A DNA stretch of 64,000 nt, taken from the NCBI GenBank assembly GCA_024704765.1, contig JAKMXF010000055.1, forward strand, positions 823,264 to 887,263. Direction: 5' to 3'. This stretch comes from Oopsacas minuta. Taxonomy: Eukaryota; Animalia; Porifera. The notes beneath the pieces are model-generated. The model saw only the letters and a list, made by a program, of their open reading frames with translations. It was not told the origin of the DNA and did not search any database. The position numbers and the translations under genes are program-made. Each line of letters opens with the position of its first letter. Within the stretch, counting starts at the first letter, position 1. Shown here piece by piece: positions 19,150 to 64,000 of this stretch.

Positions 19150-20500
19150 AAGTTGATTCTCCTATATTTAGTGAGGTTCAAATGAATTTTTGTGATTCCA
19201 TTATAGATGCAGTATGAATATGCATTGCACTTGTTCAAATATAAAGTTAAAGAACAAACGTATTCGACGACTTACCGCATTTAACACTAAGTGTATTCAA
19301 CTAAAATCGATTTACTCTGATGTATAAAATAATCATTAGTTACAAAGCAGAGAATAGGCGTGAACAAGATTCATTTATATAGATTGACGGATATCGATGT
19401 ACAAGAATATCCTAGTTACATGACGAATAAGAATATAACAAAATATTTGCAATTCTGAAATGGTCGAATACCTTTGTCCTTTAACTGTATATATAGGATA
19501 GTAACATAGTGGTTCATATCTAGTTCCGGCTGGATAGAGCCGGATAGCAAATTAGAACCCAATATTCGGTAGAACTCTAATCAGAATGTGGTTATATACT
19601 TCGTTTTAAAGTTCTCACAAAATGGAAACCATCCAAACTAAACCCATTAATCGATATTTTGATAATTGTCAATCCATGTTTGGCCACTAATATTCTAATA
19701 TAGACTTGTATCTATTCAATCGAAGAATTTAAGTATTGACATGAATTTTGTATTCAGGTTTATACGATTTCTTAATATACATAATCCAAGCAAATATCCA
19801 ATCAACAATCCAAAATTGTTCAATTGGTTTGGAATGGCAAACCTGGTAATAGTTATTAAGGTAGAATGTACTATAGTTGGGTATGATGCATATTTCTTGC
19901 ATAGCATTTAATACATATTTTATACTTTTGTTATTTGAAAGTCCCCGAATTGAGATAATCGAGTAAAATAAATTTCAAAATTAGCATCAGCAGCACTGCA
20001 AGCATACACAATGTTAGATAAAACAAAAGCATAAATAAAAATAATAATTTGCGAGCTGTGTGAAGTGGAGAATTTAGTGGAAGTAGAAAGGTGTGTCAAA
20101 GGGGATATATAATTGTTGTGAGCTACCTAAGGATTTGAAAACGATTATATTCTTCAGGTAATGCAATAGCTTAGAAAGTTGTCGTTCGGCATACAATTTG
20201 CACAAATTTTCCAAAATTGATCATCTAGCATCAAACAAACACAAAAAGATTACGATACAAAAGAAAAAATATTTGATTATATCCTGAAATGATACATTTT
20301 ATGTAAAATAATTACATGCCATTGCTGAGTTATGGAGCGTAATGATTTCGATTACAGTTCATCCAGTTTGTAGAATAAGTACATACAGAAACTCCAGTAT
20401 GGAGAATTGGTTTCGGATAGTGAAACACAGTACATTAAATCAGGGATATACTCATACACAGAAGTTACTTATATTACGAGAAATTCATATAGACTCCATT
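19150..20500 (+). pseudogene. Second, more decayed NOF-like Mutator transposase
   Basis: YSW.MMHISCIAFN (~19870-19915), KLSFGIQF, NYMPL.ELWSV and NSSMENWFRIVKHSTL (~20390-20440) align in order with motifs of the 1960-4009 copy (YSWALIHSTCIAFN, KSPFGRHF, YYMPIVPLWTG, ANAEIWFRIVKHPIL). Confidence 0.55.
19461..19487. repeat. Solo terminus of the long-TIR MITE family (another at 52521-52537)
   Basis: GGTCGAATACCTTTGTCCTTTAACTG+TA matches the MITE right ends at 29762 and 58659. Confidence 0.65.
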
Positions 20501-27395: not shown

Positions 27396-28390
27396 TATAT
27401 ATAAATCAAATTGAATTTATCATTCTACAATATTATTGAATACAAGTAAGCTTTGCTTACTTGCGCTGCGCGATACGCGGACACTTAGTATACAAGTGTG
27501 GAGCACTTCGGGTGCATATTGTAATCATATTGACGTACTATTGGTTAAATTCTTATATACATGAATATCAAGCATTGAAAAGAGTTGGAAATTCGGAATA
27601 GCTGCTATGATGACCATACGCAGTCAAGGGACAAAATGATTCTACCGCATAAATATATTGTCATAAATTGTATACTCTTTCCCGCTCCTATATATTATGT
27701 AGTCCATATTCGTAGATGCAATCTAGTAATTTGCATAGAATAACACATGTTTTTCAAGAATTTCAAAAAAATATTTTCGATTTACACTCTTTGAAGGTAG
27801 TGATTATTAATAATGAAAGTATGTAGTAACTCAAACCTATTAAGAATCTAAAATTTCTTACTTGATACTTGAATTCTACTTAGGGGAGTTACCTCAGATT
27901 GAAATTTACAATGGGATTGAACAATTTTGCCAAAGTTATAGAAAAATTTCAATTTATGCCACTTTGTGCAAAAGGTGCACAGGTGGCAGGAAAGAACGCC
28001 ACTACAAGGAAATCAACTAGGGTTATGAGGAATAAGTCAAAGGAATATTTTCGAATGATATGACTAGCTAACCCTTGATTTCCAAAATAACCCCTTGGTA
28101 GCGCCACTTATGCCACCTCGGGCAAATTTGGCACAAATTGTTCAATCCCATTAAAAATTCTAATTGGGAGTAACTCGCCTACGTAGAATTCAAATATCAA
28201 GTCTGAAATTTTAGATTCTTAATAGTTTTTGAATTACCATATGTTTTGATTATCAATAAATATCTAATAATTATTAATGATTAACAACTTCAAAAAGTGT
28301 AAATCGAAAATATTTTAGAAATTCTTGAAAACATATGTTATTCTATACAAATTATTAGATTGCAGCTACGAATATAGACTACACAATATA

Positions 28391-29690
28391 CTGAGTGCTC
28401 AATAAGTTCGAGTAAACTATACAAAGCACTTACAGTAGAGCTAATTTAACGTAACCACATACATACCTAGTGAATCCATACTTCCTAACCAAATTTCAGG
28501 ATTATAAGTACTATACTCGATCTTTTGCAGCCAATTTTATAGTCTTCACTTTCTATATTTTAATATTATGGAAAATTTGAATAAGAGAGATTTCCGTGCC
28601 ATCATTTTCTACAATTTCAAACGTGGATTAAACGTTGCGGATTGCAGTTGTGAGATGTTTCCTATCTTTGGGGATCAAAGTCCAACTCAATCCAACATCT
28701 ACAATTGGTGTCGTCAATCCCGTTTGGGCCACACATCCCTTGACGATGAGTTACGTTCAGGACGTCCAATTACCGCGGTCACCAAGGAGAATATCGACAA
28801 AGTATCGAAGTTAGTAACTGAGGATAGGCAAATCACTGTCAGACAGTTAGCTTTCGAGGTTTCGGTCTCATCGGGGACAATAGAAACCATCTTACGCCAA
28901 CACCTTGAGCTAAAGAGGGTTTGTCTAAGTTGGTCCCCCATTTATTAAATTTTGAGCACAAAAATCGTCAATTAGAATTTTGTCGTTGTATGCTGCTAAA
29001 GTATTCCAAAAAAGATTCGCGACGCTGGTCAGAAGTCATAACTGGTGACGAGACATGGATCTATTATTACGACATTCAATCAAAGCAGCAGAGCTCAAAA
29101 TGGATCTTTGAAGACGAGAAACCAGACACAATTACTAAGCAAACCAGGGCGGTCGGCAGCGAATGTTTGCTGTTTTCTTCTCTACAAGAGGAATAATAGA
29201 ATATGTGATGCTTCCTGAGAAGCACACTATTACTGCAACTTGGTACACTGAAATTGTCTTCCGCAAGTGTTCCAAGCTGTCGAGAAGTTGCGTCCAAAGA
29301 CTAGTCTTCGCGGAATGAAATTCCACCATGACAATGCTCCAGCTCACACTGCACGAAAAACTAAGGACTATATCAAACAATTGGGGCTAGAATTGATCGA
29401 TCATCCACCCTATAGCCCAGATCTAACCCCCTGTGACTTCTGGTTGTTTCCTACTACAAAACGCCATATAAAGGGTAGACGTTTTGATTCGGAAACAGAG
29501 CTGAGCGCCGCATTTTTGGATGCAATTGACCTCATACCAGAAAGTCGCTACTCAAGACTATTTGGCATGTGGTTAAAATGGTGTCAAAGGTGTATTGATG
29601 CTAATGGGGAGTATTTCGAACATTTGAAATAGTATTTTTATTCTATCTGTACTGTAAGCATACTTTTACTCGAACTTATAGAAGACTCGA
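28391..29690 (+). mobile_element. Full-length mariner (DD34D) element, 1300 bp, inserted in the MITE right arm
   Basis: 26-bp TIRs sharing ATAAGTTCGAGTAAA. TA duplication confirmed against the empty site ACACAATATATAGGAGC in the 58.6-kb MITE copy. Confidence 0.96.
28568..29632 (+). pseudogene. mariner transposase with frameshifts
   Basis: RSGRP, LVPHLL, TGDETW, HHDNAPAH, PYSPDLTPCDF, GEYFEHLK*; split across track ORFs 28568, 28921 and 29267. Confidence 0.95.
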
Positions 29691-30141
29691 TATAGGAGCG
29701 GGAAGGAGCATACAATTTATGACAATAAATTTGTGTCGTTGAATACTTTTGTCCCTTAACTGTACGTTTCGCGTGAATCATAAATTCTATTTAATTTATG
29801 AAGTACAATTTTGTAAAAATGGTCAGAAATAACCTGTATTTCTTTGCACAACGCCTTGGTGCATTTTTATGTTGTGTAAAATGTGAATATTTATAAATGA
29901 ATAGTTTATGAAATTATAATTCACTGTATAATTATTGAGGAAACAATAATTTGGTAACGTGAAAATGTAATGATCAATTTATTACAACAAAAATCAGTTA
30001 AATTTAACCACGTGACATCTGAATAATATCCTACTATACAGCAGTTACATAGGCCAATTATTGCAGAAAATTCAATTAACAAACATAGTTATAGAATTAA
30101 GAAATTGGGATCGAAAGAATTTGCTAAATTTGAAATATTTA

Positions 30142-45129: not shown

Positions 45130-46050
45130 GAATAATACATTAATTCGAGGTACTATCGGAGTTAAAGTATTCCGCACTATGTTCGATGGGGAAATGTCGG
45201 GATTCTTACAGATGCAGCAGGTGCAAAATGTCAACTGTGTACTGGTACCTACGATCAAATACATGATCTAGAATTGATTAAATCTGGCTTTCCATCAACT
45301 GAACTATTTCTGCTGCTAAAGAGATACTTATTCAAGTTAACAAAAGTAATACATATTACTTACACATTCACAAAGATTTGGCTGAATCCCTTGAGCCCAT
45401 ATCCAATTTAGACGCTATTTGTGCTTCTCCACTTCACTCTTACGCATGTGGTTTCCGCTGGTTCATGTTAATTGTATATCATCTACATTTAGGATCGAAA
45501 AATTGTCACCAAAGTGTGCTAAAGTGAAAGATTCCTCAAAATTTGTACAAGTTGTTTGTAAGAGAAAATAATTTGAAAATAGATCAACCGTCAAGTTCAG
45601 GCGAACCATTTCCACCGTTAATATAGCGCGAAGTTGCTTTGGAGATAAAGGAAAAAGGTTTTACTTACTGGATTACATCTTTAGCCCTGTTCTATGAGCA
45701 TTTACTTACCATGACGGTTTACTTACCTTCTCTATTATTTCTATCCACTATGGCTTCACGATTTATACTTCGTACTACACATCTACTTATTCGGTTTACA
45801 TTATATTTATACACGTAAGCAACTATTTCAAAGTTATTGTGATTTCTAAATCAAACCATCTATTCTAAAGCAATAGTATCACTAAAAGTATACGAATTAT
45901 CGAAGGAAAGATACGTTATGAATTAGATCAATAACAGGTTCATAGTGTTTAGATGCTTATAAATACAGAGCAGGATTGCTGAAATTGTGGTGGTTTGAGC
46001 AATATCTACAAGGTGTTTTAAAATTGAAGTCGTATTTTCTAAATTTGTTT
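45130..46050 (+). pseudogene. RAG1/Transib/Chapaev-like transposase remnant
   Basis: RTMFDGEM, then (frameshift) GILTDAAGAKCQLC..DLELIKSGF; EPISNLDAICASPLHSYACGFRWFMLIVYHLHLG; IDQPSSSG..STVNIARSCF; QVHSV...GGLS. Same order as recalled RAG1 motifs (YDEK, CTLC, DALH, GNFARK, NYFHK). Confidence 0.65.
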
Positions 46051-46106
46051 ATTCTGCACCCATGCAATAATATGTGTATTTAAACTCACAATGGTAATTT
46101 ATCTTA

Positions 46107-49100
46107 CAGGGTTCTATTGAGTAATTATATCATTCATTAATCGAAACATTTCATAGCTTCTAGTTCCATATCCAATTTAGCTAAATCTTTGCATAATGTA
46201 ATGGTGAAAGAATAGAGTATTATGATTCGCTAACAGCTGTTGAGATACTACAAGCTGGCTCTTATCAAAAGTTTGTGTCTCTCAAACTTGGAGTTAATAT
46301 CCGTACAGTTCAGCGTTGGTGGCGACTTTTCAGGAATGGTTTGTCATTAGAAAAGAAAGTGGGATGTGGCCGTAAATAGTCCATATCGAAAGTTGCCAAG
46401 ATTGTAATTACTAAATTAATTGGCAAAAAACGACAGTCTGTACGTGGTCTATCCAACAAACTGAAGTTGAAAGGCCATTCCGGATCTCAGAGTACAATGT
46501 ACCCAGGGGCGGACTGGCCTACGGGGAGACCGGGAGATTTCCCGGTGGGCCGATAGGTAGATGGGCCGGTGAGCTTCTGACACCCCCTACGCAAAACCTT
46601 CCAAACACAATATCAGAACTGGGTCCACACCTGTACCATGTAAATACTGTTGAGCGATCGAAAATATGGAGATTTTTAGTGTCAGCCCTTAACATTAGAT
46701 TTCAATTTAATTATACTATTCAGTTCTCAATTCTTAGATTATTTAATATTTTTACTAAAATAACGTTATGATAGATGGATATAACAAGCAGAAAAGGAAA
46801 GGAGGAGCTGAAAAAATTCGGGATAAAAAGAGGTTACAGCTCAAAGATGCTGCTAATCGACCTGGACAGCAGAGAATTGGATCGAGAACTTCATCTGAAT
46901 CCACTATACCTGTGCAAATCGGGGTATGTATTGCTGTAGTTGAGTCCTCAATTACCAAAACAGGTAGTGAACAAATTCAAAAATGTAGTATAGAATGTCA
47001 AGGATCTGATACTGATTCCAGTGGAGAACAGATGGATGACTACACTTAAGAAGCTCATGTTGTTGTCCCGACCAATGTACTCAGAGCTGAAATCGGGACA
47101 ACATTATATGAAGATGAATTGACTATGGAACAATCCCAGAATATAGGGAAGAAGCACATAATGTTGGCTTACCAGAATGTGTAGATGCATATTTCACCAA
47201 ACCTACAGAAATGACAGAAATTCCTTTTTCCATTACCACCCACAACAACCACTTACTAAGATTCCATTCAATCCAGAAAAAGCATATAAGAGGGGTGGTT
47301 TTTCACGTCATTGGTAAACATTTTCTGAATCTAAAAAGGCTTTATTTTGTTCTGTCTGTCTGGCATTTAGCAAACCGTCTGAGTCCAACAAATTTACTCT
47401 TGGAATGAGTACTTGGAAGCATGTTTATCAAAGAATTGAAGAACATAAAGTTCTCAATATCACAAGCAAAATACAGATGCTTTCTTAATTTAATACACTC
47501 TTCTGAATGTGATATTTCCTTTCTTTTGGTAAGAGACGCTACAAATATACGCAAATCACAGGTTATTCAAAACGCAAAGTTATGGAACGAATTATTGATA
47601 AACTCATGTTCATAGGAAAACGTGGTCTGAGTTACAGAGGTAATAAGGCTGAAAGTGCCTTTCTTTTAGATGATCCGTTAATTGATCATGGTAATTTTTT
47701 AGAACTTTTATTGTTACTGTCAAAATACGATGAAATACTAAGAGTTAATCTTGACAAAGTCATATGTGAGAGCAAGAAGCGACACAGTTCGCTTTGTGAA
47801 GGCCAAAAGGCCGTAGATCTCTCCTCACCCTTATTTCCAAAACTATGTTAAACTACATTCTTGAGGCAATCCATCAGCCACAGCTTGATTTAATAGTTCA
47901 AGAAGTGAAAAAACCCGGGATCGATTCCATTCAGATCGATGCAACTCAAGATATCACAACTACAGATCAGTGTTCAGTAATTATTCGTTATGTAACTGAT
48001 CAAGTACATGAACGTCTTCTTGCTTTCGTAGCCAGTTACTCAGGTAAGGGGTCAAGGTTATTCGAAATGCTTCACACTATTTCGAAAACCAATAATTTGA
48101 AGATTTCTCATTGCATTTCTGACAGTACTGATGGTGCAGCCAACATGGCTGGGCAATATAATGGCCTCATGGATAAAACAAGCATCGCTTAATCATAATC
48201 ATGTATGGTGTTATGCACATGTATTAAATCTGGTCATCACAGAAGCCACATCCTCAAATTCAGCTTCTATTTCTCTTTAGGGATTACTGAACTCCTGCGC
48301 TACTCTTTCTCTAATTCCTACTTGAGAATGAACGCCTGGAAAGGCAATCTCAGTGAATCAAAAGGATCACATAAGCTGAAACATCTTCAGGCAATAGGAA
48401 CTACTCGTTGGTGGTCAAAAGACAGAGCACTAAAAATATTTTGGGAATTGGAAGGATCCTTTCAATGCATTATTTGTAAATCTTATTGAGGTTTGGATTC
48501 AATCTCCAAAGCAGCTGAAATGAACGCAAAGGCAAGGTTGATGCTCAGGCATTACTGAGTGGCCTAATAAAATATGAAACAATTTTGGTTGCACATATTT
48601 ACCCTAGATTATTTCAAGTGACTACTCCACTATCTGAATACCTTCAAACTTCTGGTCTCGACTTTATACAAGCTCAAGGAATGACTGTAACAACTATGGA
48701 ACCCCTTAGGAGAATGAAAGATGAATTTGAGTCCATTATACTAACTGCTGACAAAATCATTGAATCTCAAAATGAAAAGCTAGAATTATTATACTGTGAT
48801 ATTTTTCTTGATAATTCACTTCCTCTTAGAAGATACAGAAAGAAAATATAATGCCAGGTGACGAAGCACCAGATGAGTCACCAACTGATGCACTGGAAAG
48901 ATTTAACATTGAAACTTTTAATGTAATATAGATACAACTATACAAAGTATAGAAAGAAGGTTTCGAATACATGAAGATCTCTATGTTTCAATTTCTTAAT
49001 TTGATCCTCGCAATTTTGACAAGATAAAGTTACAAAATACCTTGCCGGATTCCGCAATAGAAAAGGTGTCTACTTTACTTAAACAACATTTTCCAGAAAT

Positions 49101-50400
49101 CAAAGTGGATGATTTAAGAGATGAACTCATTTTGCTTGCTAATAATTGGTCAGCATTCCAGAAAGTTCTGCCTGAAAACTATCAAACACTAGTTGAAAAT
49201 GAAAGTGATGATCTGGAAACGGGACACGAAAAGAGCTGCAAGAACTGTATGACATGTGTTTATACGTGTCTATTAAGATACAATATGTATGTTAGATCAT
49301 ACCCTACACTTTTTGCAGCTTACAAGTTTCCATTGACAATATCAGTTACACAAGTTGCATGTGAACGATCGTTCTCTAAATTGAAGCACATCAAAACAAA
49401 ATATCGCAATCTTCTAACACAAGAACATCTGGAGGGATTCATGATGATGTGCGTAGAAAAGGACATTTTAGCCCAAGTGGACACCGAGAAAATAATCAAT
49501 CATGTTGCGAATAAAAGTCAGGAATTGTCAAAGCTTTTACAGTTTTAGGTTTGAAAACACCATATAGAATTTTGTATAAAAAATAAATCTGTTTTTAATA
49601 AAGTGGGCCGGTTTAATAATATTTTCCCGGGCCGAATATTTGAGCCAGTCCGTCCCTGCAGTGTACCTTTATTCGACAAAAGAAAAGGGCATAAAATATC
49701 ACAAACGCCAGCGGCAGCCGTTAACAACAGAGAAAACACATGGCTGCTAGGTTAAAATTTTGTAAATAACGTATCACTTGGACAGCAAATGATTGGAAAA
49801 CATATTATTAATAGATGAACCACCGTTTGAGTTAAATCATCCTCTAAACAATAAAAATGATTGTATTTGGGCGAGAAACACATTGGATGTCGAGCCCGTT
49901 CAGACAGTGAAATTTCCAAAGAAAATTCAAGGATGGGATATGATGTCACATCGTGCACTGCCGGAATTACTCTTCATTCCCGTTGGGCAAACTGTATCTG
50001 CAGAATACTATGTTAGTGAGATACTGGATAAAACTTTAATGTCTACAATGAATAGAAAGCAAGAAAGAGGCACAAGGCAAACATGATACAAAATTGATTG
50101 AGAAGTAACCTAAATGTCCAGATTTGAGTTCTATTAAGAACATATGGTCGATTTTGAAAGATGAGCTAGATTCAATAAGTGAGTCAAAAGACACAAAAAT
50201 ATTGGATAATCGACTAAAAACAGCATGGTCCAATATTTCATCAGAGGTTTTGGGCAAATTGATGGATGGGTTACCAAAACGAATCCATAAGTGTATTGAA
50301 CTCAGTGGTGAATATATTGGCAAATAATTGTAGTAATATTTCTATTATTCTATTAATTATGTAATATTGTATAACACGAAATCAATTGTGGAACACCCTG
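46107..50400 (+). mobile_element. Tc1-like element of the same family as 34280-35626, interrupted by a hAT and internally deleted
   Basis: Right TIR GAACACCCTG+TA; left TA+CAGGGTTC is degenerate. Sequence GVNIRTVQRWW...KVAKIVITK...(hAT)...KRQRQPLTTEK...VKFPKKIQGWDMMSH...GEYIGK* parallels the 34.3-kb transposase. The QQDGAPAH segment is missing. Confidence 0.85.
46504..49658 (+). mobile_element. Full-length hAT element (TTF zinc finger/DUF4371/hATC), 3155 bp; transposase pseudogene ~46769-49548
   Basis: TIRs CAGGG(G/A)CGGACTGG with GGGCCG subterminal motifs. Flanks CAATGTACC / CAGTGTACC. Motifs LSYRG..GNFLELL, IQIDATQDIT.DQCSVIIRYV, TDGAANMAG, TTRWWS and VACERSFSKLK. Confidence 0.97.
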
Positions 50401-53129
50401 TATATATAAATACAACTTAGAATGACATTCGTTTTCTTGGTATTAGAACAGTGCTGCTAAGTGAATTCAGAAAAATTATAGAGATTGACTAAAATATACG
50501 TAGAAACCAAATTTTTAAGGGAACATATAAAATCCCTTAATGACCTTCAACAGGCATAATTTGATTTTACAAATGTTATTAGCTAACAACTTTATATGAA
50601 TAATCATTAATACATGCAGATATATGGACGCTTTCTCCTTTCTAAACAATAAGCTATAATCACTATCAGATGTAACAAACTATCAAAGTACTACTTTATA
50701 TGGTCGTACATACTTTGAGAAAATCACTCGTACATTTCCGAAGTATGTACAAACGTTGAGAAATTCTGAATAATGACCTTCATCGTTAATAAAAAGTACT
50801 ACACTTCCATGTAATTTGCTAGAAATATGTAGAAATAAGTCTTCATAAGTAGATACGTAGAGAACAGTCAAATTTAGTCTACGTAAGATTACGTAGACTT
50901 GGCAGCACTGTATCAGAGTGTCAATTTTTAAACGAATATGTCAACATCCAGCATTTTTGGAAAAAGCAATTATTTGAACTTCTGACAATACCAGCTGCTA
51001 TTAGCATCTATCAAAGATTTCTTAAATATATTTTAGGAATGTTAAATTCAAATTTCGTCTCACGGTATCATGAAATATAGCTTTCTCCCTCTGTAACAAT
51101 AAAGCGAGAAATTACCCCTCGATGAGCATTAACACAGCCTCTTTGAAAGGCTCTTCCAATAATGGTTACCAAACCTTTCCAGGTGAAAATGATCCCCACT
51201 TTGCTCACCTGTGAGTTTAGTGAACTTTCTAGTAACTGTAAATGATGCTCTTTAGCGTTTCCTTGAGTAATTTTAGGAATTTAGTGACTATAGCTTCATT
51301 TGAAACAAGAACTGTTTTATATATATTAAATGTGTCACTGGATCGTAAGATATCCCAATAAACATGCCGAATTTGGAATTCCATCCTAAACTAATGTTTC
51401 TGAATTCGTTGAAGTGATGTCTCGAATAATACCACTTTGATTGAGATGTTATTAGATGTTTATTAACTATCATATGTCAACAAACTAGATTTAAGTTAGT
51501 CATCGAGTTGGAACCGAATAGAAGGCCCTCAAAGAGAGTACATCATTCCAAATATCAAATTCTCTGGTGTTAATCCACATTACTAAATCTCAATTGTCTG
51601 TTATCAAGGACAAATAAACAGAATGAAATATTGAATCTGTGTATAATTCTCAAATAATAATAAATAAAAAGCTACTAAATAATTCGCGAATAGAAATAAA
51701 TTACTTTAAAATTGTTGCATACTTGAATGCATAGAATTAAAATCGAATAAGTAGATGTGTAATTGGAAGTATAAATTGTGAAACCATAGTGGATAGAAAT
51801 AATGGAGAAAGGTAAGTAAACCGTCAGGGTAAGTAAATAGTCATACAACGCCCCATATCTATATCGAGATTCTTTGGAAAAGATACAAATCAATCTCCTG
51901 TAATTTTGCGTATCTTTGGCTCTGGCAGATAAATAGAACAGAACACCTTGACTTTGTTTGCCGTGAAACGTATGTGCTCATATTAACGCAGTTTCCGTCG
52001 GTTAACAATAGTCCATCTTTAAATAAAATGTTAACTCATGGCAACGAATTGATCAAAGAATGTGACAACAGCTGCGGTTTGAAAAGCATTTCCGAAAAGG
52101 GACATAGAAAACATTGATCTAGCGACATAATTCGTGGAATACAATATCTTGCCAAATCTATGAATTTTAGTAAATTGAAGCCAATGGCACTTCGTATTTT
52201 GAGTTGGTATTTTGACAAACTATTACTCTACGATTGATTATTACGGTGTAATCCTAAATATTTTGGCTTGTTTTTGATTCCAGGCAACATTGTAATCTAT
52301 AAAACCACAAATCACATTGTTGTCTATAATACAATGGAATTCACTCCTGAAGAATACAAACGAAGTCTTTACAATTCATGATGGTCATAATTACATTGAG
52401 TCAAAACCAACCGGAACCCTAAACATGCTATCTATAGGACAAGATGCAAGGGACTAGTAAGATTAATCGTGAAACAAAATTAATCACCCCTTTGAAAGAA
52501 CACAATCACAAAACAATTAGATTTTGTCCTTTAACTGCATCTTGATAATTATCCTATATACTACCGGGTGGACAAATAAATGGGGTACCTCCACTTTTCG
52601 ATTCCTTTGACTGACATAATGTATATTATTTCCAATTTATATAGTAGACAATATCTAATAGCTCACAAGTTAATTAGGTACTTAAACGAAGCGACTAGTT
52701 GGAAACAAATGTCACACTGTAGTCTCCTAAACAGGAAGGATTCAGGAACCAGATAGAAGCGAATACAAAAATCGATGATACAGATATACTGAACAACTTG
52801 TAGTGGATGAAGGTGTGCTCGAGATTAACTTCACTACTGATGAGATGATACATGTTATATTTTCGTTTACTTTGCAAAACACTTAATGTTGAATTTGTCC
52901 GAAAAGGTATTAATTCAAGATAATGAATACATAATCGTGGTGCCAACACAAAATTGAATATATATTTCAGTATATAAGAAAACAGAATGGTATTTCCCTC
53001 AAAACATTGATTGAAAGAAAGAAAGACATATCCAACCACATATACTGTCAGCGACTCTACCTGATTGCCATAAACGAAAACCAAACTGTTCCAGGCAACG
53101 TGATGTATTAAACACCCATGGATCACTTA

Positions 53130-54830: not shown

Positions 54831-55661
54831 AAATATACTACTTTTACAAAGTTCAAGTACATCTGTCATTCAAAACCTCATGCCAAATTTAGATAAGCCT
54901 CATAAATGTACTCTTAACATGTATTAACCCGACAGTATAAATTTCATAGATATCAAGTTCGCCTGCATATCTGGAAATGTACATGACGCAATCACAGGCC
55001 ATTCGTATCAAATATTTATGGGTCAATTAACTATTTAAAAGGTCAATAAGATAATCTACATGATATTCATAGAATCTGTGATATTATGAATATATGTTAT
55101 ATACAGTGCACTCCATTAAACTATAGTAATAAACAAAGCTTGAAAATTTGACTCCATTATCGCATATACAATCTACCGAAAATATGTATTTTATCTGATT
55201 TGAACCAACTCCTTAAATATGATGAAAAGACATAAGTGTAGGCCTCCGTGCTGGTCTGAAATCTCATTAAATACTTCACAAATATACTAATAAAATGGTG
55301 AAAACTTTCAAGCAATAGATCTGCAGTGTACCAAACAATCGTGGCGTAACAGGATAAATACTTCCAATGAAGAGTTCAATTAACGGAATGCAAGTGGATA
55401 ATCATAGAAAGCCAGCGAGCAACACAAATTAACATTTTCCAAATAGACAAGTGGAAGAGAAGATATCGAGGTAGCTAATCATTGGGAGATGGAAACAGAT
55501 AATTATTCAAGAAGAATAGTGAAAAAACACAATAAAAACTGATGTTACATAGGTGTAATAAGATCGCTAAGAGTGGAAGGAATGTATTGAGAACAACGAA
55601 ACAAGACACAAAATATCATCAGCCATTTGTCGAAACAGCAAATAATGAGGCCCACTGGACA

Positions 55662-58600
55662 TCATTCAACTACATTACCCAAGAGCACATGATTAAAAAC
55701 CGCAATCAATTTTGGCAATAAATTTAATTTATATTTTAGATCAGGGGTCAGCAATATCTGAGTCTGCGGAGCAAATTGAGTCACTTAGCCTATTACCTAA
55801 ACAGCGGCGCTCGCAATTATCTGTCGACCAGGGGCAGGCTAGGGCGAGATCAAATTATATAATAGACAGTGCTGGTTCGAGTATCTGGCATCCTCTGTAC
55901 TGGACGGGGCCAGCATTTCCAATTCTGGGGCAAATGGCCCTTTCCTCACCCTGAGACAGCCATGTACCCGGTCCGAACGATAGATATTATTGAGCTAAAT
56001 ATGTCAATTAGATTTATTTCCTAAGATTAAGCAATCTTCGATTCCCAATGATTTGTCCACTGTGCTAGCGGGTCGAACTAAATATTACTGATTAATTTCC
56101 TATAAGAAAAACGAGAAAGAAGCTAGCAGCCAATTCAAATGAAAAATCGAGTTCACTTCAATCGTTTATCTGACCGACTTACAGTATAGCTAAAGAAATA
56201 ATTAGTTATTGGTCGAAGTAGAGCGTTGGTGGAGTAAGAAAATGTCATCCGAATTGTAACATAGCATTGAGAGTTTGAAAACTTTCCATTCGTGTCAACT
56301 TTAATGTGTTATTTGACCGGCTTCTCATTACTATTTTGATATAAGTTTCCTCTACATACTATTGACGGCTGGTGGATTATGTGCTGAAGATTACTTTTTA
56401 AAATACTTATTACTTTTTGAAATATTGTATTTTGAAAAATTCAACGAAGAAGTTAGACTAGGGTCACTTAAGTCACTAATTTGACTCACTTATACTCGTC
56501 AGATTTAAACGAAATTAGCATCATTGGAAAGAGGAGAGTTGAACGTTTTAAGCAATATGTTTGATTTTGCAAACTTTTTGTGCTTAAAAATTTTTGTGTA
56601 ACGGCTCCCTTGAATTCACATACCTAAGAGTCAGAATTCGATTCTGAAATTATATATGGATACTTTGGTGGTATGGACGTTTATGAAAATTAACTTTCAT
56701 TAAAAATATTAACAACTCGCGGAGCTAGAGGTAATCAATTTTTAAGGCAGGAGCGAGAGTGGTAGGGCATGAATCATATTGTACATACAGTAGTGTCGTT
56801 TCATTCTCCTGTTTCTTACCCTAAATCCGACTTAATTTTCAATTATTTTATGCTAATCGATAGTTAAGACATAGAAGTTTATAACAATATCAATATTTTA
56901 CAAATTATCACCACAACGGCTTGCAAAAATTGATAATTTCTGAGGCTTTCGTGTATTACGAAATATAACTTATTTCTCTTCGGAGCCCCTTCAAAATTTA
57001 TACATACCTTCGTTCGTACCTTATAATTCAATTTACTTAAAAAGGAGGTCGTTAGTCATTTTTAAATATTTGTATATTTGTAATTATTTTGTTTACTCCA
57101 TTTTTCTCAGTTGCTTGACTATAAATGATTGCGTTGTATGATGGGAATTATTGCATAGACTATAATCGTAGAACTATACAACACTTGCTTAGATCATTAG
57201 TACGTATAGGACGTCATTCCGTCATCTTGTTATAGTTCTCATTTGCAAATTGTTTCAAACATTTAAGGACTTCTTTGTAGTTAACCTACATACAAAAAGA
57301 ATTGATATACGTTACTTATGTAATAACACAGATAATTAACATTTTAGCATACACCCTTAAATTATTGAATTTGTTCTTCAAGATGGTTCAAAGAGATAAA
57401 TTTAGAGAGTAATCAAAGCTATTTTATCATTTATAACTTAAGCAATATACAAATATCAGCATACGTTCTGCAATGAATGACTCGTCGTGTCTGAAAATAT
57501 TCCAAAATCAGAAACATATTTTACTCTGTATGATTCTTACTATTTATTGTCTAAACACCTGAATGTCATACATATATTGCACACACTACTTGTAATTTGG
57601 CATAGGGGAACCAAGAACCAGTGCATAAATAGAGAATATTACATTTTCTGTTTATGCATGTCCTGCACTTGATACAAGATACCTGATTTGTACATATATG
57701 AAATTATTTACAGTAACTGAACTATTAAATTATGGGATAAGAAATAGATTCGCCAATGTACAGTCTCAGGACAAAAGTATTCGACTACACAAATATATTG
57801 TTATAAATTGTATACTCTTTCCAGCTCCTATATATTGTGTAGTCTATATTCGTAGCTGTAATCTAGTACCTTGTATAGGATAACCTATGTTTTTCAAGAA
57901 TTTCAATAAAAATTTTTGACTTACACTCTTTGAAGGTGTTGATTATTATTAATTATTGGATAATTATTGATAATCAAAATATGTGGTGATCCAAAACCTA
58001 CTAAGAATCTATAATTTACGACTTGATATTTGAATTCTAGTAGGCGAGTTACCCCAGTTTAAAATTTTCAATGGGATTGAACTATTTTTGCCAAAGTATT
58101 GAAGAGTTTCAATTTGTGCCATTTGTGTAACCTTTTGCGAAGGTGGCACAAGTGGCCGTTACCAAGACGTTATTTATAATTCAAGGATTAGCATAGTCAT
58201 ATCATTCGAAATATTACTTTGACATATTCCTCCTAACCCTGGTTGATTTCCTTGTAGTGGCGCTTATTCCTGCCACCTGTGCCACTTTTTGAAAAAGCTG
58301 CACAAATTGAAACTCTTCAATAACTTTGGCAAAAATAGTTCAATCCCATTGAAAATTTTAAACTGGGGTAACTCGCCTACTAGAATTCAAATATCAAGTC
58401 GTAAATTATAGATTCTTAGTAGGTTTTGGATCACCACATATTTTGATTATCAATAATTATCCAATAATTAATAATAATCAACACCTACAAAGAGTGTAAG
58501 TCAAAAATTTTTATTGAAATTCTTGAAAAACATAGGTTATCCTATACAAGGTACTAGATTACAGCTACGAATATAGACTACACAATATATAGGAGCTGGA

Positions 58601-60755
58601 AAGAGTATACAATTTATGACAATATATTTGTGTGGTCGAATACTTTTGTCCTGAGACTGTGCATTGGCGAATCTATTTCTTATCCCATAATTTAATAGTT
58701 CAGTTGCTGTAAATAATTTCATATATGTACAAATCAGGTATCTTGTATCAAGTGCAGGACATGCATAAACAGAAAATGTAATATTCTCTATTTATGCACT
58801 GGTTCTTGGTTCCCCTATGCCAAATTACAAGTAGTGTGTGCAATATATGTATGACATTCAGGCGTTTAGACAATAAATAGTAAGAATCATACAGAGTAAA
58901 ATATGTTTCTGATTTTGGAATATTTTCAGACACGACGAGTCATTCATTGCAGAACGTATACTGATATTTGTATATTGCTTAAGTTATAAATGATAAAATA
59001 GCTTTGATTACTCTCTAAATTTATCTCTTTGAACCATCTTGAAGAACAAATTCAATAATTTAAGGGTGTATGCTAAAATGTTAATTATCTGTGTTATTAC
59101 ATAAGTAACGTATATCAATTCTTTTTGTATGTAGGTTAACTACAAAGAAGTCCCTGAATGTTTGAAACAATTTGCAAATGAGAACTATAACAAGATGACG
59201 GAATGACATCCTATATGTACTAATGATCTAAGCAAGTGTTGTATAGTTCTACGATTATAGTCTATGCAATAATTCCCATCATACAACGCAATCATTTATA
59301 GTCAAGCAACTGAGAAAAATGGAGTAAACAAAATAATTACAAATATACAAATATTTAAAAATGACTAACGACCTCCTGTTTAAGTAAATTGAATTATAAG
59401 GTACGAACGAAGGTATGTATAAATTTTGAAGGGGCTCCGAAGAGAAATAAGTTATATTTCGTAATACACGAAAGCCTCAGAAATTATCAATTTTTGCAAG
59501 CCGTTGTGGTGATAATTTGTAAAATATTGATATTGTTATAAACTTCTATGTCTTAACTATCGATTAGCATAAAATAATTGAAAATTAAGTCGGATTTAGG
59601 GTAAGAAACAGGAGAATGAAACGACACTACTGTATGTACAATATGATTCATGCCCTACCACTCTCGCTCCTGCCTTAAAAATTGATTACCTCTAGCTCCG
59701 CGAGTTGTTAATATTTTTAATGAAAGTTAATTTTCATAAACTCCATACCACCAAAGTATCCATATATAATTTCAGAATCGAATTCTGACTCTTAGGTATG
59801 TGAATTCAAGGGAGCCGTTACACAAAAATTTTTAAGCACAAAAAGTTTGCAAAATCAAACATATTGCTTAAAACGTTCAACTCTCCTCTTTCCAATGATG
59901 CTAATTTCGTTTAAATCTGACGAGTATAAGTGAGTCAAATTAGTGACTTAAGTGACCCTAGTCTAACTTCGTTGAATTTTTCAAAATACAATATTTCAAA
60001 AAGTAATAAATATTTTAAAAAGTAATCTTCAGCACATAATCCACCAGCCGTCAATAGTATGTAGAGGAAACTTATATCAAAATAGTAATGAGAAGCCGGT
60101 CAAATAACACATTAAAGTTGACACGAATGGGAAAGTTTTCAAACTCTCAATGCTATGTTACAATTCGGATGACATTTTCTTACTCCACCAACGCTCTACT
60201 TCGACCAATAACAAATTATTTCTTTAGCTATACTGTAAGTCGGTCAGATAAACGATTGAAGTGAACTCGATTTTTCATTTGAATTGGCTGCTAGCTTCTT
60301 TCTCGTTTTTCTTATAGGAAATTAATCAGTAATATTTAGTTCGACCCGCTAGCACAGTGGACAAATCATTGGGAATCGAAGATTGCTTAATCTTAGGAAA
60401 TAAATCTAATTGACATATTTAGCTCAATAATATCTATCGTTCGGACCGGGTACATGGCTGTCTCAGGGCGAGGAAAGGGCCATTTGCCCCAGAATTGGAA
60501 ATGCTGGCCCTGTCCAGTACAGAGGATGCCAGATACTCGAACCAGCACTGTCTATTATATAATTTGATCTCGCCCTAGCCTGCCCCTGGTCGACAGATAA
60601 TTGCGAGCGCCGCTGTTTAGGTAATAGGCTAAGTGACTCAATTTGCTCCGCAGACTCAGATATTGCTGACCCCTGATCTAAAATATAAATTAAATTTATT
60701 GCCAAAATTGATTGCGGTTTTTAATTATGTGCTCTTGAGTAATGCAATTGAATGA
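55662..60755. repeat. 5.1-kb near-perfect palindrome (arms 55662-58156 and 58272-60755, 115-bp spacer)
   Basis: Mirror ORF pairs in the track (55712/60705, 57487/58933, 57698/58722; coordinate sums 116417-116420). By-eye comparison shows about 16 substitutions and 4 small indels outside the innermost ~40 bp. Confidence 0.98.
57761..58659. mobile_element. Long-TIR MITE, copy B (899 bp), at the centre of the palindrome, opposite orientation to copy A
   Basis: TA+CAGTCTCAGGACAAAAGTATTCGAC...GTCGAATACTTTTGTCCTGAGACTG; arms and spacer homologous to 27621-29762. Confidence 0.93.
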
Positions 60756-62956
60756 ACGATTGAAGTGAATACTTTTCATTGAATTGGCCGCCAAATCCCA
60801 AACTGGAAAAATCAACAAGATTACCAAATTTATATTCAAACAATTCACAATAAATCCTCTGTTCAATACCCAAGAATGCTATCTTGGTTCGAAAGTTGGT
60901 GCCGGACACTTTGCGTGCGTAATTATAATCTTGAGCACGACAATCAGAAAATGGAACATCCAGGCTTTGTAATATAGTCTCCGCAATTTGTAGTCCTGTT
61001 TTTTTTTATCGCCTATTTATTTAAAAGCATATCATTCATGGGATAACGTTGACGTTAGTCACTGGTGAGATACTCCAACTCAAAGTTGTTTGTTCCATAA
61101 TAGCAGAATCGGGTCTTCTATCAACTATCACAGAAAATATACCTCACTTTCATTTCAAATAAGGCAACACTAATTAGGTGTATGAAGATTCGGGATGAAG
61201 ATCGCTGGGAGAGTGTTCGATAAACCATTTATTTCCTCAAATTCCTATTAAGTATCCTGATGGTGCCATCAATTGATATTTTAGGGTATTTTGGCATATT
61301 CAATTTCTAACATTCATAATACTCATAATACTCAATACATTAAGAGCAAGATCAATACTGTGTTTGCCAGGTTCACTGCCCTGACCTTTGGTGTTAGGGT
61401 AGTGAACCAGAACTGAAGATACAAAATGCACGACAACCATGGGATACAAACATATCTACCAATTGGGTTGCTAAAGGGGATACTGACAATCGCCCTGGCT
61501 TTGCCAGCAAGCTCTAACTACTCATATGTAACGAAGGAATTTCTTTCATTTTCTATATATTTGATCCATTAGGATAGTGGTTCTCAACTTTGTTTTATCG
61601 GACCCAATATAATTGATCAAAGGAGTGGTCGGGAGAAAGTTAAGAACCAATGCTGCCGAAGATTACATGTGGATCAGTGAAAACAATTGTGTAATCAGGA
61701 TAAGTTAAATAAAGGGAATCATTATAAATTCCAAAAGACGAATACATTTTCTCCAACGTATTGTAGGGCAATTATAAAATTAATAAGTGTGAATCAACTG
61801 AACATAGTTGTTATCTAGGGCACAAGAGTAAATCTAGTTCCTTGGGGTGTCAGTTAGGGAGTCATAAAAGAGTAAAGTCCCGACTGTGAGATTCAAATTC
61901 GTATAGGCTCAATATGTCCTAACAGAGTCTCTGCGAGAAGTGCAAATACATATTATTCGTAATATTTAGAGAGATGTATCAAACAAACTAGATATCTAGC
62001 ATAATGTCAAAAGCATAAATTAAACATAACCGAACAAAGTCATTTCACCATAAATGGCTAGCAAGGGGGCAATGCAGGGGAAATAAAATATTGAATTATG
62101 AATAAAATGGACTAACTTATACTCACCAAGAGAAATTCTTCTTCCCTGTTCGAAATATCTAGGAGAAGAGGTACAAAGTCTTGGATGAAGGACCTAGAAG
62201 GATAAAGGCGAAAATGGGAAGAGCTGAAGGAGATATACTTCCATAAGAATAATTACATACCAAAATAAGTTAATATTAGGAAAGTCGCCGACAGAGTGCG
62301 ATAGCCATGGTAGTTCACATACACATCACATGTGCAACCATGAAGCAAACAAATTTGTGTCGTCAGTGCATAAAGCAATCGCGCTTTACTTATTAGCTCT
62401 GTGCAGACTGGATGTACACATTGGGCTGGGCAATTAGTTTGTCGAATTAAGCAAGAGTATGGAATCAAAAATTACAATCTGGCACTTGGGAGCCGTAAGG
62501 ACTAGTAGCAGCATAAGATATATATATAATCAGCACCGCACCATCACATTACGAAATTAATAAAAATGTTAACCAATAATCAGTGGATATTATTAGTCAA
62601 TCTTTAAAACTGTAAATTGACGAATGTTAGCCAGTTCATTGCAATGTCGCACATTGTTCGGTCACGAATTGTTACTCAGTAATCATAGGATATTATTAAT
62701 AATCCTTGAAAATCAATTGGAGAATTTAACCGTTTAATGAAATGTCAAAATAATTAATCAGTAATCATCGGGAATAGTGAGTTGATACTTAATTCTTTAC
62801 AAAAGATTAATTGGAAAATATTCACTATTGATTCTAATGTTGCCCATTGTTTGGTCACGAAATATTAATCAGTGATCATCGAATGTCATTAGTGAATTGA
62901 CTGAAATCATCGAAAATCTAAATTGAAAGCTTGACGATGTTTTAATGTCGGACATA

Positions 62957-63650
62957 CTAGGGCGTTCAATAAGTCTTGCGGGGGATATCATAGAATATGA
63001 TACAAACACTACACACACTAATTCACTATATTATTTATTCAAAAGTAATCCCCTCCTGCAGATTCACAAAGTTTTAACCTTTCCACCCACTTGTAAACAC
63101 ATTTCTGTACTCTTCTTCGGGGATGGATTTGAAGTACTGGTACAGGCCCGTTCCGAGTGCTTGTAATGTGTTAAAATCTTTGCCTTGAAGGTAGATTTTA
63201 AGTTTGAGGAATATCCAAAACAACACGGAGTTAGGTCTGGTGAGTATGATGGATGGGGAAGTAATTCTAACCCTTCTACATCCCAGAAATTTTTGATAAG
63301 CTTAGCTGTATGGGAACTGGCGTTATCAATTAAAATCTTCATTCCTCGAGTTCCGGTTTTCGGGCGGTACTTTTCTATATTTTTTATCAAATTTGGAAGC
63401 ACTTGCTCTGTAAAATAAGGAGCAGTAACAGCCTTGCCACTCTCACAAGATAATTGCAAGACAATTCTATGACTACTGAAGAAGATGGTATACATAATCT
63501 TAGGTTTCTGAAGTCGGGTATAGGAATTTTCGCCGGTTGTTCGTCGCCCCTCACCCATGATAGCTTCTTATACTTGCTATATGGCGTTGAATAGGACCGA
63601 CGTCTCGTCACCGGTAATAATCTTTTTTAGGCGTGTTCCGTGAGATTGTA
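62957..63650 (-). mobile_element. 5'-truncated mariner (DD34D)
   Basis: TA+CTAGGGCGTTCAATAAGTCTTGCG TIR. Minus strand reads TGDET..., LIDNASSH, PSYSPDLTPC, GGDYF; sequence upstream of ~63650 is unrelated. Confidence 0.9.
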
Positions 63651-63704
63651 ACTCATCTATATTAAACGACTGTGAATTTGCAGGATATTCGACCAGGACA
63701 ATTT

Positions 63705-64000
63705 CAGTCACTAATTTGACCTACTTGTACTCATCAGATTACTCGAAATTAATATCATTCGGTAGCGGATAGTTGGGCGTTGTATAAAATATAATTTTCT
63801 TAAACATTTTTTGACTTTTACCTATCTATTTTGTCATGACGAGTAGGGTCGCTTCTCTATTAAATCGACGACCTAAAAGTAAGGATACAAATCTGAAATT
63901 TTGTGTCTATATCTGTGACCCATGGACGTTTATGTAAACTAAATTTCATCCAAAAATTCCTAAAACTCGAGGAGATACAAGTATTCAAAGTTGAAGTCAG
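63705..64000. repeat. Dispersed repeat family (also 56470-56715, its mirror near 59.7-59.95 kb, and ~5520-5620 inverted)
   Basis: Shared GTCACTAATTTGAC..ACTT.TACTC.TCAGATT (56472, 63707) and ATGGACGTTTATG (56673, 63922; reverse complement at 5580). Confidence 0.55.

Follow-up and report, generated by a model that had tools for sequence, protein, structure and literature searches.

The stretch of DNA analysed here (the window, 64,000 nt) is part of contig JAKMXF010000055.1 of Oopsacas minuta, a hybrid assembly from several adults. The assembly data comprise Illumina paired-end, Nextera mate-pair and PacBio CLR reads from different adults (PMC10280926); the PacBio CLR reads are filed under BioProject PRJNA761294. 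If window and record share their orientation, the palindrome described below lies at about 878.9–884.0 kb of the contig. Within the window lies a 5.1-kb palindrome, formed by two inverted copies on either side of a single-copy spacer (58120–58299), with a Tc1-like MITE at its centre. Its main parts are as follows.

55662–58119, plus strand: left palindrome arm, 2,458 nt, made up of 2,099 nt of flank and the left MITE TIR (359 nt); its identity to reverse-complemented 58300–60755 is 98.94%.
58120–58299, plus strand: asymmetric MITE core (loop) that forms the spacer of the palindrome, 180 nt, its rims only ~72% self-complementary.
58300–60755, minus strand: right palindrome arm, 2,456 nt (right TIR and mirrored flank).
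57761–58659, plus strand: complete Tc1-like long-TIR MITE, 899 bp, termini CAGTCTCAGG...CCTGAGACTG, flanked by TA at its left end and TG at its right end.

An inverted-repeat search recovered the arms as four collinear blocks (55662–58097 against 58323–60755) with complementarity of 98–100%, and a BLAST comparison of one half with the other, reverse-complemented, gave a single alignment, 55662–58119 against 60755–58300, with 2,460 columns, 98.94% identity, 20 mismatches, four gap openings and E = 0. An earlier note, made from the letters of the window, had described arms of ~2.5 kb, about 99% identical, in which ~2.1 kb of MITE-flanking DNA is mirrored, and no TSD at the outer ends. All three points hold, and a comparison of symmetric positions at the outer ends gave no direct repeat ≥5 nt long. 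Its 115-bp spacer needs correction, since the spacer is 180 nt at the 99% level; to bring it down to 122 nt, one has to include a 64-nt extension that is 72% complementary. Between the arms the TIR differs by three mismatches and one indel in 359 nt and the flank by 17 and three in 2,099 nt, and the two divergences are equal. The differences comprise 17 transitions and three transversions, with five of the 20 at CpG sites, and this mutation spectrum is biological. Residual homology between the two outer flanks, sought as the trace of an eroded longer palindrome, was not found. Likewise, no notable direct, inverted or tandem repeats occur within the arm, its ORFs gave no Pfam match (including an 80-aa ORF at 55712–55954, for which an exact-protein look-up for further copies returned no record), an Rfam search of the arms gave nothing at the gathering threshold or at E ≤ 1, and no tRNAs were found in them.

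The central MITE was compared with a second copy of its family in the window.

27621–29762 (27621–28390 and 29690–29762), minus strand: comparison copy of this MITE family, interrupted by a nested insertion of 1.3 kb, with TIRs only 83–87% complementary and unmirrored flanks.

This copy, lying between unrelated flanks, begins and ends at bases homologous to those of the central MITE, and the CAGT... termini are common to both copies and to a third end fragment. The flanking dinucleotides are TA and TG at the central MITE, TG being one transition from TA, and CG (degenerate) and TA at the comparison copy. Other genomic copies in the reads have a consensus that ends ...CTTGACTG, then TA; they diverge from the window in the final 8 nt of the right TIR, and share this terminus and the TA before entering varied flanks. 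Loose contig ends at the MITE depart from the window sequence at 58651 and run on to the same shared terminus and TA. The termini of the family are CAGTCAAGGGAC.... As the comparison copy and the read copies have the same ends, the bounds of 57761 and 58659 given for the MITE at the outset are correct. The k-mer depth of the MITE (1e4–1e5, against roughly 50–150 in the flanks) indicates hundreds of further copies of the family, and seven to nine MITE contigs with different flanks were present per run. Elsewhere the family has normal, non-mirrored flanks.

The 899-bp MITE contains no ORF and no Pfam match. Its predicted single-stranded hairpin has an energy of −420 kcal/mol (z = −70). A DDE_3 relic lies at 63064–63558, and no TIR match between it and the MITE was found in the window. 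The centre of the palindrome is a bona fide mobile Tc1/mariner-type MITE with a hairpin-forming 359-bp TIR. Complementarity of the TIRs extends to about position 360 in both the central and the comparison copy. The sharp identity boundary at 58119/58300 was considered as a mark of the priming point and rejected as evidence of one; because the family TIRs stop at the same ~360 in the comparison copy too, this boundary is a feature of the MITE family and is uninformative on priming.

Short-read evidence was taken from contigs (Logan) of three libraries, X1, X2 and X3. Both outer junctions are crossed without branching in all three, each junction in separate contigs. The X1 contigs over the junctions (55250–55721 and 60696–61200) show 0 differences, and those of X2 (55326–55702 and 60715–61200) carry a haplotype with ~3% flank difference. 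Further in, X1 contigs match the right arm with 0 differences over 58635–59041, 59218–59797, 59977–60115 and 60086–60725. All contigs stop exactly 30 nt past the last arm-specific base, as is expected where two arms merge in a k = 31 graph. A simple fold-back path or chimeric-read artefact was rejected on three grounds: the two arms are not identical, arm-specific edge alleles are linked to different flanks in three libraries, and the mismatch spectrum is biological. Likewise rejected was a chimera of two inversion alleles (F_L-A-M-F_R and F_L-M'-A'-F_R), since each library has both outer junctions, unbranched. The 5.1-kb palindrome is a real germline inverted duplication in Oopsacas minuta.

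In the interior of the arms, nine substitutions and two indels in X1 are all of the right-arm type, whereas X2 and X3 carry the left-arm type at 14 of 15 sites. This sorting by library is one of the observations that would be expected if the centre had been mis-assembled, that is, if A existed in two inverted copies that each end in a MITE, next to F_L and F_R, with more DNA between them or further apart, SPAdes had threaded them via one high-copy MITE, and the 1% differences were alleles of different adults. The hybrid assembly did mix data types from different adults (PMC10280926), a MITE with hundreds of copies makes for a tangled graph, and no read or contig was seen across both junctions. 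However, both outer junctions are unbranched in X1 and X2 and carry arm-specific edge alleles, an artefactual fold-back path would yield identical arms and no separate right flank, and PacBio reads could thread a 0.9-kb repeat. The locus, moreover, lies more than 90 kb from either end of the 977-kb contig, in a window without N. We consider a mis-assembled centre improbable, and even so the large inverted duplication including the MITE stays real.

The flank that is mirrored with the MITE is composite.

56453–56750, plus strand: passenger fragment, mirrored at about 59670–59966, related to the foldback element at 63688–64000, with k-mer depth 5–20 times that of the flank.

The fragment and the neighbouring foldback element (63688–64000) are 71% alike, k-mer depth varies five- to twenty-fold along the arm, and the loose contig ends change along it too, which agrees with the earlier description of the flank as a patchwork of repeats. 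Contigs over the outer arm have ~1.5–2 times the depth of short flank contigs in X2 and X3 (up to 3× among the ratios) and ~1× in X1, where one contig reaches a mean depth of 595; Logan contig depth is a per-contig mean and unreliable, and with contradictory ratios it was dropped as a copy-number test. The outer arm DNA is about two-copy in two libraries, and so does not look like a dispersed foldback transposon. These data bear on a further explanation, in which the whole 5.1 kb would be a mobile foldback-type or composite element with 2.46-kb TIRs, either of a superfamily without TSD or with a decayed one. Weak Helitron-like hints (the arm begins TC after A, and the 41-mer described below holds a small hairpin-like motif) and the X1 contig of depth 595 favour such an element, but there is no outer TSD, neither terminus has another copy in the 64-kb window, and the outer-arm depth in X2 and X3 is only ~1.5–2 times that of the flank. 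The depth variation along the arm fits a mosaic of unrelated repeats rather than one element, and the tandem subrepeats typical of FB arms are missing. A mobile element of this kind is very unlikely. The palindrome does share long inverted arms and a small centre with foldback transposons (Drosophila FB, Galileo/P-like), from which it differs in having no TSD, no sign of several copies, mosaic arms without tandem subrepeats and an independent Tc1-like MITE as its centre. A Helitron-like nature of the outer 505 bp, suggested by the TC start and the hairpin in the 41-mer, was considered; a CTRR end is lacking, the window contains no additional copies, and we have no explanation for these features.

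The outer edges of the palindrome depart from the rest of the arms.

55662–55691, no strand assigned: outer edge of the left arm, mirrored at 60726–60755, with four of the 20 mismatches within 30 nt.
60755–60792, minus strand: 37-nt sequence outside the right arm, ~85% like the arm-internal 41-mer.
56126–56166, plus strand: arm-internal 41-mer, with a mirror copy at 60251–60291.

The arms are ~13% diverged at this edge. The edge differences reach 55691 in X1 but only 55672 in X2 and X3, and the contigs end at 55721/60696 in X1 versus 55702/60715 in X2 and X3. The 37-nt sequence stops exactly at the edge of the right arm, which it overlaps by 1 nt, and has no counterpart beyond the left arm; we have no explanation for this repeat abutting the right outer junction.

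Changes private to the central MITE are mirrored in both of its TIRs. The tips read CAGTCTCAGG, against CAGTCAAGGG in the family, and a substitution (57823/58597) and a 1-nt indel (58039/58380) are likewise present on both sides. At 20 sites the left and right TIRs of the central copy agree with each other and differ from the state on which both TIRs of the comparison copy agree, with only two to three singletons in the central copy. Because these private changes are mirrored in both TIRs, TIRs and flanks must have been homogenised together as one unit. Furthermore, the sorting of interior alleles by library and not by arm, read from the alleles retained in bubble-popped contigs, which cannot phase the arms, hints at arm-to-arm gene conversion. 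Since the mirrored TIR changes, the concentration of divergence at the edges and the library-sorted alleles all imply homogenisation, the 99% identity of the arms cannot date the duplication. Of the overall reading in the earlier note, the real palindrome, the MITE centre and the lack of an outer TSD stand, whereas nucleation by the MITE, replacement of one original flank and a transcribed hairpin RNA are conjectural.

Homogenisation also enters a reading in which the palindrome came first, as a ~4.2-kb inverted duplication or foldback-type structure whose spacer was tiny or absent; the MITE would then have inserted at the central TA, and conversion would have homogenised TIRs and arms. TA is itself palindromic, so both models predict mirroring right up to the ends of the MITE, and an arm edge ~13% diverged, together with a 37-mer that is ~85% like the copy inside the arm, suggests that the age of the structure may far exceed what a divergence of 1% would imply. 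Such an insertion, however, must strike exactly one TA among many in AT-rich arms, and the equal divergence of TIR and flank becomes a coincidence unless conversion is invoked. Long palindromes without a spacer are, moreover, unstable where tested, and the origin of the palindrome itself is left unaccounted for. We regard this order of events as unlikely.

We give about an even chance to an origin in which the MITE hairpin led to fold-back or template switching and conversion thereafter kept the arms alike. The starting state would have been a resident Tc1-like MITE whose 359-bp TIRs could form a very stable single-stranded hairpin; this candidate stem predates the event in the family, as 359-bp TIRs are also present in an independent MITE copy. 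A nascent or resected 3' end may then have folded back or switched template near the MITE loop, and synthesis would have copied the opposite TIR and ~2.1 kb of adjoining flank in reverse. The new end would have been rejoined to the chromosome without a target-site duplication, the outcome being F_L-A-MITE-A'-F_R; the outer ends have no TSD, and a 1-nt overlap is seen at the right junction. Later, gene conversion between the arms probably keeps the 2.46 kb alike, acting least often in the outermost ~30 nt. Several points weigh against fold-back. The classical model gives whole-arm dicentrics, and a 2.1-kb arm needs a second switch or end-joining, which is postulated. No read or contig runs across both junctions, and no empty or pre-duplication allele was found that would document a replaced flank or the direction of copying. 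The model does not predict a repeat such as the 37-nt one at the right outer junction, the symmetry alone fits equally well a MITE insertion at the central TA of an older palindrome, and the depth in X1 lacks a clear two-fold excess, contig depth being unreliable.

There is good documentation, from yeast, ciliates, cancer cells and human patients, of fold-back duplication nucleated by inverted repeats, which is usually viewed as an unstable or pathological intermediate. Short inverted repeats induce palindromes in Tetrahymena rDNA and in yeast, and hairpin-capped breaks at Alu inverted repeats are a related precedent. Hairpin-mediated foldback-inversion GCRs with a single-copy spacer have been described in yeast (Li, Putnam & Kolodner 2020, PMC7467729); in the human germline, inverted duplications are known whose spacer is disomic (Hermetz et al. 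2014, PMC3907307). Like these, the O. minuta locus has inverted copies, a single-copy spacer bounded by an inverted repeat capable of forming a stem, and no TSD, and its outer end needs a secondary event to resolve. Unlike them, it has a 359-bp transposon TIR as its stem and an arm of only 2.1 kb, and it is interstitial, with no visible terminal deletion, translocation or dicentric. It is also inherited, in at least two haplotypes, and is known from sequence, the forming event being unobserved.

Arm-to-arm gene conversion is known from primate sex-chromosome palindromes. The present locus resembles these in its near-identical arms, in the concentration of divergence at the edges and in variants that apparently sort by haplotype or library rather than by arm; its arms, however, are far smaller, non-coding and made of TE debris, and conversion is deduced here from retained alleles and contig ends. 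With hairpin silencer loci of the Mu killer type in maize it shares a transposon-containing inverted duplication that would give long dsRNA if transcribed, but the duplicated TE part is a non-coding MITE with passenger debris, not a transposase gene.

The locus offers a clean example, found in nature, of a rearrangement whose kind is known, and involves no new mechanism; being one locus in a hybrid assembly of several individuals, it counts for now as a good example and not as a discovery. It repeats the architecture of fold-back duplications in a small, stable, inherited and interstitial form built on the hairpin of a transposon. Should single molecules confirm it and further cases turn up, it would mean that in the germline of animals MITEs are able to give rise to palindromes and inverted duplicates, and it would offer a compact natural system for the study of palindrome tolerance and arm-to-arm conversion. 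That the long-TIR MITEs of O. minuta recurrently seed fold-back duplications of their flanks, and that gene conversion between arms keeps the resulting palindromes near-perfect, is a tentative proposal that we think rather doubtful. The O. minuta genome paper makes no mention of lost hairpin-processing repair genes. Were such recurrent seeding true, MITEs would regularly give rise to palindromes, to inverted copies of genes and to loci with the potential for hairpin RNA, and their host would be an early-branching animal with an unusual tolerance of long palindromes.

The palindrome was defined by a single alignment of 55662–58119 with the reverse complement of 58300–60755, extending over 2,460 columns at 98.94% identity, with 20 mismatches and 4 short indels. 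The arms are collinear over their full extent, and no internal repeats were found inside one arm. The palindrome is real and far above chance expectation, and the alignment confirms an earlier sequence-only note, which had described a large MITE-centred palindrome with arms about 99% alike; the spacer, given there as 115 bp, measures 180 nt (58120–58299), with weak self-complementarity (72%) at the rims of this core only. As also claimed, there is no target-site duplication (TSD) at the outer ends. The arm mismatches comprise 17 transitions and 3 transversions, and 5 of the 20 lie at CpG, which makes up ~5% of arm bases; because of this transition bias and CpG excess, the differences look biological in character. 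The GC-rich outer arms each contain one short open reading frame:

55712–55954 and 60463–60705: 80-aa ORF, one per arm

Two arm differences fall within it (55906 and 55948), each third-position synonymous. With no match in Pfam or Rfam and no called-gene record, the ORF is probably due to chance.

The central MITE (57761–58659) has CAGTCTCAGG at its start and the complement of this sequence at its end, and adjoins TA on the left side and TG on the right. A second copy of the family (copy 2, 27621–28390 + 29690–29762) has termini homologous to those of the central element (copy 1), wholly unrelated flanks, and is divided by a 1.3-kb nested element. The latter (28390–29690) has ~30-nt terminal inverted repeats (TIRs; TATACTGAGTGCTCAATAAGTTCGAGTAAA and complement) and lies at an ATATA/TA site in copy 2. 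The window holds one further trace of the family:

19434–19492: third, isolated end fragment (match near 19461–19488), ...GGTCGAATACCTTTGTCCTTTAACTG, then TA

In public reads, k-mer depth is 1e4–1e5 in the MITE versus roughly 50–150 in the flanks, and in each run 7–9 contigs diverge from the window at 58651, continuing as CTTGACTG and TA into differing flanks. The central element is thus a high-copy, TA-targeting, Tc1-like, non-coding MITE, and the family termini, depth and copy 2 bear out the long-TIR MITE proposed at the palindrome centre. As single-stranded DNA it is predicted to form a hairpin with a stem of ~359 bp (−420 kcal/mol, z = −70). The surroundings of the palindrome consist of transposon debris:

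45728–51809: decayed hAT element, ORF fragments between inverted repeats (relic at ~46.7–49.5 kb)
45728–45838 and 51699–51809: hAT element inverted repeats, 111 nt, 84%
49042–49548: ORF fragment with hAT dimerisation domain, E = 4.8e-9
63064–63558, minus strand: DDE_3 / mariner-type transposase fragment, 164-aa ORF, E = 1.4e-6

The DDE_3 ORF may be the relic of a Tc1/mariner autonomous element close to the palindrome; no TIR match between it and the central MITE was found.

JAKMXF is the whole-genome project of Oopsacas minuta (Santini et al., 2023; PMC10280926), a hybrid SPAdes assembly of Illumina paired-end, Nextera mate-pair and corrected PacBio CLR reads, scaffolded by SSPACE and polished by pilon (PMC10280926). 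An ORF of the window has a verbatim counterpart on contig JAKMXF010000055.1 (976,792 bp; GCA_024704765.1). The window contains no N, and the locus lies >90 kb from both contig ends. Read evidence was taken from three runs of one study (X1, X2 and X3), all as Logan contigs (k = 31). No RNA run was among those containing the locus; the hairpin RNA suggested in the earlier note would form if the locus were transcribed. In the flanks, X1 contigs are identical to the window. X2 and X3 contigs carry Tn5 mosaic-end adaptor remnants and so are consistent with the paper's Nextera mate-pair libraries; at 29 flank sites (~2–4.5% in variable flank stretches) they depart from the window base, the only base seen there in X1, and they therefore represent another haplotype, probably from another adult.

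Both outer junctions are spanned by X1 records (55250–55721 and 60696–61200, no differences) and X2 records (55326–55702 and 60715–61200), and the left one by an X3 record (55250–55702). All junction contigs end exactly 30 nt past the last arm-distinguishing base, the expected behaviour of a de Bruijn graph where arms merge. A fold-back path artefact would leave the arms identical and the right side without a flank of its own, neither of which is seen, and two inversion alleles joined as a chimera would require branches at 55661 and 60756, where the contigs show none. It is unlikely that the assembly wrongly joined the arms through the MITE; in favour of such a mis-threaded centre, every short-read graph is tangled at the MITE, and among the contigs of the three runs no record spans left flank, arm, MITE, mirrored arm and right flank on one molecule. 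Judged by short X2/X3 contigs, arm depth would be ~1.5–2 times that of the flank; X1 does not show this, contig depth being unreliable for copy number. A single low-depth X2 contig joins mirrored arm positions 57091 and 59329 via a 19-nt palindromic insert (AAAATAAGCGGCTTATTTT); candidate explanations are an artefact of the mate-pair library, a shorter fold-back variant present at low frequency, and a further palindromic copy of that repeat.

In copy 2, too, TIR complementarity ends at about position 360, so that the inner boundary at 58119/58300 is the end of the family's TIR rather than a mark of where priming started. When the four TIRs of the two copies were compared, one-sided changes numbered 66 in copy 2 versus 2–3 in copy 1, and at 20 sites both copy-1 TIRs differ jointly from both copy-2 TIRs. 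Most of the family in the reads agrees with copy 2 at the tips (which read CAGTCAAGGG), at 57823/58597 and at the 1-nt indel of 58039/58380; the mirrored changes are therefore private to copy 1. One copy-1 TIR has been copied from the other, at the founding event or by later arm-to-arm conversion; in the former case, a switch near the MITE loop would have been followed by resynthesis of the TIR and then of the flank. Divergence of the TIRs (3 mismatches and 1 indel in 359 nt) equals that of the flanks (17 and 3 in 2,099 nt). TIRs and flanks were homogenised together.

The outermost 30 nt account for four of the 20 mismatches (55670, 55672, 55679 and 55691), versus ~0.2 expected at the interior rate. 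Judged by contig ends, differences between the arms reach 55691 in X1 and only 55672 in X2/X3, and the edge differences are therefore polymorphic. The listed X1 arm contigs are all of right-arm type (9 substitutions and 2 indels), and in those of X2/X3 14 of 15 substitutions show the left-arm state; bubble removal would be expected to choose randomly if every animal had the two versions in equal amounts. This sorting by library hints that each chromosome has near-identical arms, as under concerted evolution, popped contigs being unable to phase, and there is a similar hint that part of the assembled 1% arm difference is polymorphism among the adults pooled in the assembly. Between libraries the arms diverge by ~0.35% and the flanks by ~3%, with variable stretches at 55250–55600 and 60830–61170 and no X2/X3 differences within ~80–100 bp of either outer junction. 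This pattern fits palindrome carriers that share a recent ancestor and whose flanks have recombined, or a lowered diversity of the arms.

Directly outside the right arm, 60755–60792 is ~85% like an arm-internal 41-mer (56126–56166; mirror 60251–60291). This 37–41-nt repeat, with an exact core of 15 nt (TTCACTTCAATCGTT), is found again 464 nt into the arm and terminates exactly at the right arm boundary; no similar repeat lies outside the left arm. Possibly it belonged to the right side from the start as an old, partial tandem unit, with the right arm then the template, or else a homeologous tract used in rejoining the copied strand, in keeping with the closeness of its 85% identity to the 87% of the outermost 30 arm nt.

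The best-supported origin of the palindrome is hairpin-mediated fold-back, or a replication template switch, at the MITE, which would have been followed by rejoining past ~2.1 kb of copied flank and, lastly, by later homogenisation of the arms. The single-copy spacer, at whose edges a strong inverted repeat was already present, the lack of a TSD, the co-homogenised TIRs and the fit with known foldback inversions (PMC7467729, PMC3907307) all argue for it. The MITE-seeded fold-back interpretation of the earlier note is supported in part, the short interstitial arm and the 37-nt repeat being unaccounted for by fold-back alone. Its main biological rival is insertion of the MITE into the TA at the centre of a palindrome that already existed, with which the sequence symmetry is equally compatible. 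That the whole is a mobile foldback element is unlikely, given the missing TSD, an arm that is a mosaic of uneven depth, and further termini not found within the window. The locus is a new natural case of a known class, either an inverted-repeat-nucleated inverted duplication or a conversion-maintained palindrome.
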